DNA of 64,000 bases from Octopus bimaculoides (Eukaryota): the NCBI RefSeq assembly GCF_001194135.2, contig NC_068997.1:9271493-9335492 (forward strand), in the 5' to 3' direction. The notes under the pieces were generated by a model, which worked only from the letters and a program-made list of their open reading frames with translations, was not told the origin of the DNA and did not search any database. Made by a program: the position numbers and the translations under genes. Shown here piece after piece: positions 2,886 through 2,998 of this stretch; the stretch's first letter is position 1, and the number at the start of each line of letters is the position of its first letter.

Positions 2886-2998
2886 TTTCTATATTTTTTC
2901 CGTGCACGGTGATGTGCTTCTAAACCTTCTGACAAAGTCTTCAGTTTTTCTGGTTCAACCTGAGTAAAAGTATGATCACCAAACCATTCCACCCAAAG
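2886..2998 (-). CDS. MBD5: Coding exon, C-terminal half of PWWP domain ([37 protein letters not shown]..)
   Basis: Acceptor TATATTTTTCAG|CTT is phase 0 and fits the previous exon. Donor AGAAA|GTATGT. Near-identical to MBD5 [25 protein letters not shown]. Confidence 0.93.

Follow-up and report, generated by a model that had tools for sequence, protein, structure and literature searches.

The PWWP domain of the MBD5-like gene of Octopus bimaculoides is split between two exons, and 39 nt inside the second of these lies an in-frame sequence that resembles a 3′ splice site and whose use would remove 13 residues from the middle of the domain. An earlier reading of the DNA made from its letters alone (the sequence-only reading) had proposed that this is an alternative acceptor whose conservation extends from molluscs to vertebrates and which may switch the PWWP reader on or off. 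The question raised by the locus is, thus, whether the motif is a regulatory element of long standing or only resembles one, and how it relates to the two forms of the MBD5 protein that occur in vertebrates. Below, the window denotes the whole stretch of 64,000 nucleotides that was analysed (contig NC_068997.1), positions without a further label are those of the window, and a caret marks a splice junction.

The MBD5/sba-type gene in the window

The gene carried on the minus strand of the window is, judged by its sequence relationships, an orthologue of the MBD5/sba type. Exons A and B together match the Pfam PWWP profile (PF00855) with 54.5 bits, the gathering score being 25.6, and the encoded domain is 96% identical to that of the Argonauta hians protein P0059, to which the giant exon of the gene is 68% identical over 1526 aligned positions. 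Relatives bearing the name MBD5 come from Blattella, spiders, the sea spider Nymphon, a millipede, amphioxus, lamprey, goose, alligator and Chinchilla, and the identification of the gene as MBD5 by the sequence-only reading is well founded on both counts. The hallmark of the family is a PWWP domain together with a downstream ...LExAIQEAMxELD motif, by which Drosophila sba and human MBD5 and MBD6 belong to the same family as the octopus gene, and its full-length members also have an MBD of the MBD5 type (VPFGWRR...GTCKCGLECP...KVFNFD). Human MBD5 and MBD6 are subunits of the PR-DUB (BAP1/ASXL) complex. The Drosophila protein six-banded (SBA) has been described as the MBD5/6 orthologue and as a PR-DUB subunit (PMC9523997).

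The giant coding exon (10933–15666, minus strand) is stop-free over ~4.7 kb, or about 1578 codons, and is bounded by the acceptor ...ttcattccag^AT and the donor GAT G^gtaaga. It is followed by PWWP exon A (7032–7192, minus), which encodes (D) + 54 residues with strands β1-β2 and the FPSWP motif and ends in GCT GGT AAG^gtgagt, with 7032 as its final base. Two tandem GTs at this donor (GCTG^GTAAG^GTGAGT; 7030–7040, minus) were considered as alternatives and rejected, as they lie 5 nt apart and the upstream one is out of frame. The intron between exons A and B (2999–7031, minus; 4033 nt, phase 0) ends in the main, constitutive 3′ splice site (2999–3020, minus; tttatcatgttatatttttcag^), and exon B (2885–2998, minus) opens at 2998 after ...ttatatttttcag^, i.e. 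after a tttttcag end. Its 38 residues run from β3 through β4 and β5 into the C-terminal helix, beginning with the codons CTT TGG GTG GAA TGG TTT GGT GAT CAT ACT TTT ACT CAG^GTT GAA CCA GAA AAA CTG, in which the caret indicates the internal acceptor-like site.

The succession of a giant exon and a PWWP domain split after ...GK is common to five further loci (L001, L002, L003, L005 and L009) and to the two vertebrate loci (L010 and L011), and the position of the intron after ...GK is identical in every lineage that has one, including the hemichordate, the skink and the croaker. In insect relatives that were found as single open reading frames (e.g. P0012, P0014, P0021 and P0027) the region is uninterrupted at this position; unlike the octopus sequence, the insect sequences do not keep TFTQ. 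The intron of the window contains SINE-like and simple repeats, with a SINE-like repeat at about 3150–3300 (plus strand), and translated fragments resembling it recur elsewhere in the window, e.g. near 16.4–16.7 kb and 48.2–48.5 kb. The same intron measures about 1.4 kb in the close cephalopod locus L004 as against 4.0 kb in the window; in L004, exon A is preceded by a hAT-type transposase reading frame and exon B is followed by one for a reverse transcriptase (3513–5654 and 14942–15508 of that locus).

At its 3′ end, exon B is defined to ±1 nt. The donor of the window reads AGA AAG^gtatgt and is in phase 0, whereas that of L004 (9668–9680) and of the other loci checked reads ...AA^gt and is in phase 2. 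As the start of exon C known from an octopod (L013, 215–245; ctag^G GGA AGG AAA ATG) also demands phase 2, the donor of the window (2879–2890, minus) has one G too many; the alternatives are a 1-nt error in the assembly and a 1-nt slide of the intron that has been compensated. The C-terminal exon itself (GRKMN...LExAIQEAM) was sought within the window and not found, and must be located beyond coordinate 1. Nor did a search for MBD exons over the 48 kb that precede the giant exon yield anything convincing; the window contains 11 N gaps, 3006 nt in total, and the 5′ exons possibly lie outside it. Weak tblastn matches to the MBD5-type MBD of a scallop (40831–40778 and 27864–27847) were rejected on inspection, the second being of low complexity, and a search among the upstream reading frames of the orthologous loci found no MBD exons. 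With the MBD exons and the last coding exon absent, the window thus represents the middle and the PWWP part of the gene only.

The 13 residues within the PWWP domain

The segment in question (2960–2998, minus; 39 nt) encodes residues L55-Q67 of the domain. In an AlphaFold2 (AF2) model of the 92-residue octopus domain, of moderate confidence as its mean pLDDT is 75 (pTM 0.58), the strands are assigned as β1 (23–28), β2 (31–39), β3 (55–59) and β4 (65–68), followed by a bridge at 74–75 and a helix at 76–91. According to this model, L55-Q67 would take in the whole of β3 (LWVEW), then the FGDH turn, and β4 (FTQV) except for its last residue. The domain without these residues, modelled in silico, gives a pLDDT of 66.6 and a pTM of 0.39 with three strands only, and matches the Pfam PWWP profile with 29.6 bits over profile positions 1–31 only. 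The sequence-only reading was right in that the strand carrying the WFG motif would be lost, but it had spoken of one strand, while by the AF2 strand assignment β3 and most of β4 would go together.

The closest solved structures are the PWWP domains of DNMT3A and DNMT3B (e.g. PDB 3llr, 5ciu and 6r3e), with E-values of 1e-13 to 1e-23. The octopus GFPSWP and W-V-x-W-F-G-D stretches align with the cage residues and the Asp of these proteins, F31, W34 and W59-F-G-D62 falling on their GFSWWP and WFGD motifs. The residues forming the cage are established knowledge for the DNMT3 PWWPs, in which the cage Trp and the Asp are essential for the binding of H3K36me, and by this alignment a three-residue aromatic cage (F31, W34 and W59) appears to be present in the long form of the octopus domain. 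W59 and D62 we take to be the equivalents of DNMT3A W330, the third residue of the cage, and D333, the Asp on which H3K36me binding depends, and V57, W59 and G61 are invariant across an alignment of 11 MBD5-type PWWPs. It has to be noted that octopus MBD5 differs from DNMT3A/B in belonging to a different family, in having no methyltransferase domain and in its different, 17-residue C-terminal helix; histone binding by MBD5-type PWWPs is putative. On the strength of the model, exons A and B most likely encode an intact PWWP barrel in which none of the three cage residues is missing, and use of the internal site would break the barrel rather than fine-tune it.

The internal acceptor-like motif

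The latent acceptor-like motif (tggtgatcatacttttactcag^G; 2959–2980, minus) has its AG at 2961–2960 within a CAG at 2962–2960, and the would-be short exon starts with the G of GTT at 2959. There is no other AG between the main acceptor and this one. The site lies 39 nt inside exon B and in frame, and its use would join EAGK^VEPEKL with the loss of 13 residues; the sequence-only reading had described position, removed peptide and product exactly, provided that they are read on the minus strand. Several features of an alternative 3′ splice site are thereby present: the AG follows a pyrimidine tract, a possible branch point (gtgAt) is found 17 nt ahead of the internal site, and the frame is kept. 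The internal AG is the second one downstream of the branch region and the tract is interrupted by purines. Scored with a hand-made, untrained weight matrix built from the textbook 3′ consensus, which has ranking value only, the internal site reaches 2.0, below the main acceptor (2.6) and the acceptor of exon A (4.3).

Sites of this quality are common. Within the giant coding exon (4.7 kb) alone, ten AGs score at least as high as the internal site (~1 per 470 nt), as do 5% of all AGs on the minus strand, and the motif is hardly beyond chance expectation. Its existence is largely explained by the conserved peptide T-F-T-Q-V, which has to be encoded as ACN TTY ACN CAR GTN, a string that is a pyrimidine-rich YAG^GT half the time. 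In being an in-frame YAG^G after a pyrimidine-rich stretch, tens of nucleotides downstream of another acceptor, the motif is like the generic tandem acceptors between which AG-scanning competition takes place; it differs from generic cryptic 3′ sites in that it appears to be dictated by a conserved peptide.

Long and short forms of MBD5 in vertebrates

Vertebrate MBD5 proteins, as well as full-length invertebrate ones, were found by exhaustive profile search, since a word-indexed search misses long annotated proteins. They bear out the statement of the sequence-only reading that vertebrate MBD5 exists in two forms, one that has the 13-residue segment and one that lacks precisely these residues. 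The long form is represented by goose MBD5 isoform X5 (P0090), which keeps a segment of the VWVMWFGVH(T/S)FTQ type, and by the lamprey protein (P0060; VWVMWFGDHSFTQ), the two sharing the pattern VWVMWFG(V/D)H(T/S)FTQ. The short form is found in Alligator isoform C (P0181), in Chinchilla isoform X1 (P0205, 1732 aa) and in a spliced mammalian transcript contig (P0178), all reading ...GK^VEPEKL, and in the large yellow croaker, Larimichthys (P0194), as ...AK^VEPEKL. Against the Pfam PWWP profile, with its gathering score of 25.6, the goose long form scores 57.5 bits and the Chinchilla short form 27.7. The intact goose sequence suggests that birds still make the long form. In goose isoform X5, the turn reads WFGVH as against WFGDH in lamprey and all invertebrates. 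The counterpart of DNMT3A D333 is thus missing, and even the long domain of birds may be unable to recognise H3K36me as DNMT3 does.

A short form of human MBD5 fits with what is seen in the close mammals and with Wu et al. (2011), who reported human MBD5 as one of two human PWWPs without a full aromatic cage (PMC3119473), a deficiency that can be attributed to the missing β3. In the genomic DNA of skink and croaker, the working acceptor is the CAG homologous to the octopus Gln codon. Ahead of exon B, the skink Lerista (L010) reads ...AAT CAA ATA ATG TGC TTT GAT ATT CAT GCC TTT ACT CAG^GTG GAG CCT GAT AAG, i.e. its intron holds a decayed but recognisable relic of the lost strand, IMCFDIHAFTQ, and as there is no AG for about 70 nt upstream, the Gln CAG must be the acceptor. 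The croaker (L011) has an ordinary intron end at this place (...ttttctcttgtctccatccag^GTA GAG CCA GAG). On the ranking matrix the working sites of skink and croaker score 3.7 and 10.5, respectively, as compared with 2.0 for the octopus motif. A bat gene model (P0193) begins within the intron, with 15 residues read from there.

The acceptor of jawed-vertebrate MBD5 is thus like the octopus motif in belonging to an orthologous gene, in following an intron placed after ...GK, in consisting of a Gln-codon CAG followed by GTN GAR CCN (V-E-P), and in removing the same 13 residues that the octopus site would remove. The two differ in that the vertebrate acceptor is in use, has no competitor at the two loci examined (skink and croaker) and follows intronic, pyrimidine-enriched sequence, whereas the octopus exon has a strong acceptor 39 nt upstream and its segment is intact coding sequence.

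Conservation among invertebrate orthologues

Exon B and its flanks were compared in the window and in seven further invertebrate loci that share the position of the main acceptor, including the close cephalopod L004 and the hemichordate Glandiceps talaboti (L012); L009 ends before exon B and was left out. By the criterion of the sequence-only reading itself, its proposal would be refuted by orthologues in which the Gln codon of TFTQ is no longer CAG, and such orthologues exist. The Gln codon is CAG in four of these loci (the window, L004, L001 and L012) and CAA in the other four (L002, L003, L005-7 and L008), both cephalopods sampled having CAG. The other invariant Gln, Glu and Lys codons of exon B, taken together, end in A 25 times and in G 23 times, and 25 of 26 codons for conserved residues in the exon vary synonymously. 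As the split between A and G equals that of its neighbours, the third base of the Gln codon behaves as a neutral two-fold site. L001 and L003, which have similar PWWPs and neighbouring sample accession numbers, differ at this very base; the independence of the four CAA lineages rests on the divergence of their sequences.

The context of the internal site fares no better, scoring −0.5 in L004, −3.8 in L001 and −2.1 in L012, the other species with CAG, as against 2.0 in the window; in L004 the tract is clearly weaker, with CAC ACA in place of CAT ACT. Conservation of the AG and its context beyond neutral expectation is therefore not seen among the eight orthologues. The encoded strand, on the other hand, is kept in bivalves, Lingula, Argonauta, spiders, Limulus, a millipede, insects, urchins, starfish, amphioxus and the hemichordate, and also in lamprey, and the models from lamprey, amphioxus, hemichordate and echinoderms are all long. 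No invertebrate short form was encountered among the PWWP regions read from protein searches, which favour annotated and long-ORF products and miss rare isoforms.

In L003, the 3′ half of exon B is also present in a second, incomplete copy (12063–12122; IKTLSEGVDANHRARKKHRK), which follows the true exon B (11246–11359) at a distance of ~800 bp and has a GT donor that agrees with it in phase. The copy is preceded by ttctag^TTT ATA ATT AAG, which would be in frame with exon A, and could be either a decaying copy or an alternative mini-exon that naturally does without the WFG strand.

Origin of the vertebrate acceptor

The explanation that we consider probable is that the octopus CAG^G is a latent, splice-site-like by-product of the TFTQ^V codons and is essentially unused in octopus. 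The octopus intron would end at the upstream acceptor, which is T-rich, proximal to the branch point and stronger, giving the exon start at 2998, and the internal AG would presumably be used rarely or never. In jawed vertebrates, the splice site would then have shifted 39 nt into the exon, onto the latent CAG, after which the former 39 nt of coding sequence would have decayed into intron and polypyrimidine tract in mammals, skink and teleost; the order of these events is the one that we infer. As far as sequence comparison goes, the octopus stretch most likely represents the material from which the vertebrate acceptor was later made, rather than a regulatory switch kept by conservation. What speaks against regarding the site as latent is that its score in octopus nearly equals that of the main acceptor, that a plausible branch point is available, that no AG intervenes and that both cephalopods sampled have CAG.

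The score and the lack of an intervening AG would favour a cephalopod- or octopod-specific minor alternative 3′ site that arose in parallel to the vertebrate one and gives a little PWWP-defective MBD5. Both cephalopod sequences have CAG, and the event is in frame, so that the short product would escape nonsense-mediated decay; the clearly weaker tract of L004 and the long Argonauta model argue against it, and we regard such an isoform as rather unlikely. It is distinctly unlikely that splicing to the internal AG takes place, at a low level or in certain tissues only, in octopus and perhaps in further invertebrates with CAG; if true, a pair of complete and crippled PWWP isoforms would either predate the vertebrates or have arisen in parallel, and the jawed vertebrates would merely have fixed the crippled form of MBD5.

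The regulated switch proposed by the sequence-only reading, toggling the PWWP reader between complete and crippled across molluscs and vertebrates, draws on the exact positional homology of the octopus site with the vertebrate acceptor, on the existence of both long and short vertebrate proteins, on the preserved frame and on the CAG codons of octopus, the second cephalopod, the hemichordate and L001. It is very unlikely in view of the CAA codons in half of the invertebrate orthologues, with an A/G split like that of other two-fold sites, of the loss of tract quality even between two cephalopods, of the lack of a short form among the invertebrate proteins read, and of the long models from lamprey, amphioxus, hemichordate and echinoderms; the proposed conservation from molluscs to vertebrates is thus not supported. 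At the other extreme, it could be pure coincidence, without any evolutionary link, that the octopus CAG^G falls on the position of the vertebrate acceptor, since any exonic CAG^GT may resemble a splice site, as might be thought from the ten equal or better sites in the coding sequence of the same gene. That is hardly credible, as the boundary of the vertebrate deletion meets the Gln codon of TFTQ^V to the nucleotide and the relic in the skink intron still ends in ...TTT ACT CAG^, from which it follows that the vertebrate site derives from the Gln codon orthologous to that of octopus; the alignment likewise supports the orthology of vertebrate and invertebrate exon B.

Implications for MBD5

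Mammalian MBD5 is a haploinsufficient neurodevelopmental disease gene. Its PWWP is a truncated domain without β3-β4, including the cage Trp and the Asp, and, if the latent-site origin is correct, the truncation is explained by a 39-nt shift of the acceptor onto the latent TFTQ^V site. Such a shift would provide a concrete reason why human MBD5 lacks the aromatic cage (PMC3119473). The truncated domain is not inert, as Laget et al. found that point mutations in the (short) human MBD5 PWWP abolish its localisation to chromocentres, and this weighs against regarding the deletion as a plain on/off switch. A complete MBD5 PWWP persists in every invertebrate sampled, as it does in lamprey and the goose isoform, and species with the complete domain suggest themselves for the study of what a full MBD5 PWWP reads. 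To the octopus genome itself, the internal site probably makes no difference.

The long and short vertebrate isoforms are already in public protein databases. No description of the 39-nt acceptor shift was found in the searchable literature, nor does it appear in the list of splice events of a 2024 review (PMC10968829), and the junction peptide strings gave no match in full-text literature. The published splice events of MBD5 are the retention of intron 9 or 11 and exon skipping (PMC10968829; PMC2917364). A vertebrate Logan transcript-like contig (P0196), in which ...EEGK is joined straight to VNNTVHQ..., skips two exons encoding VEPEKL...RNRK and SGKLNNHLEAAIHEAM, and fits the published skipping of exons 12/14.
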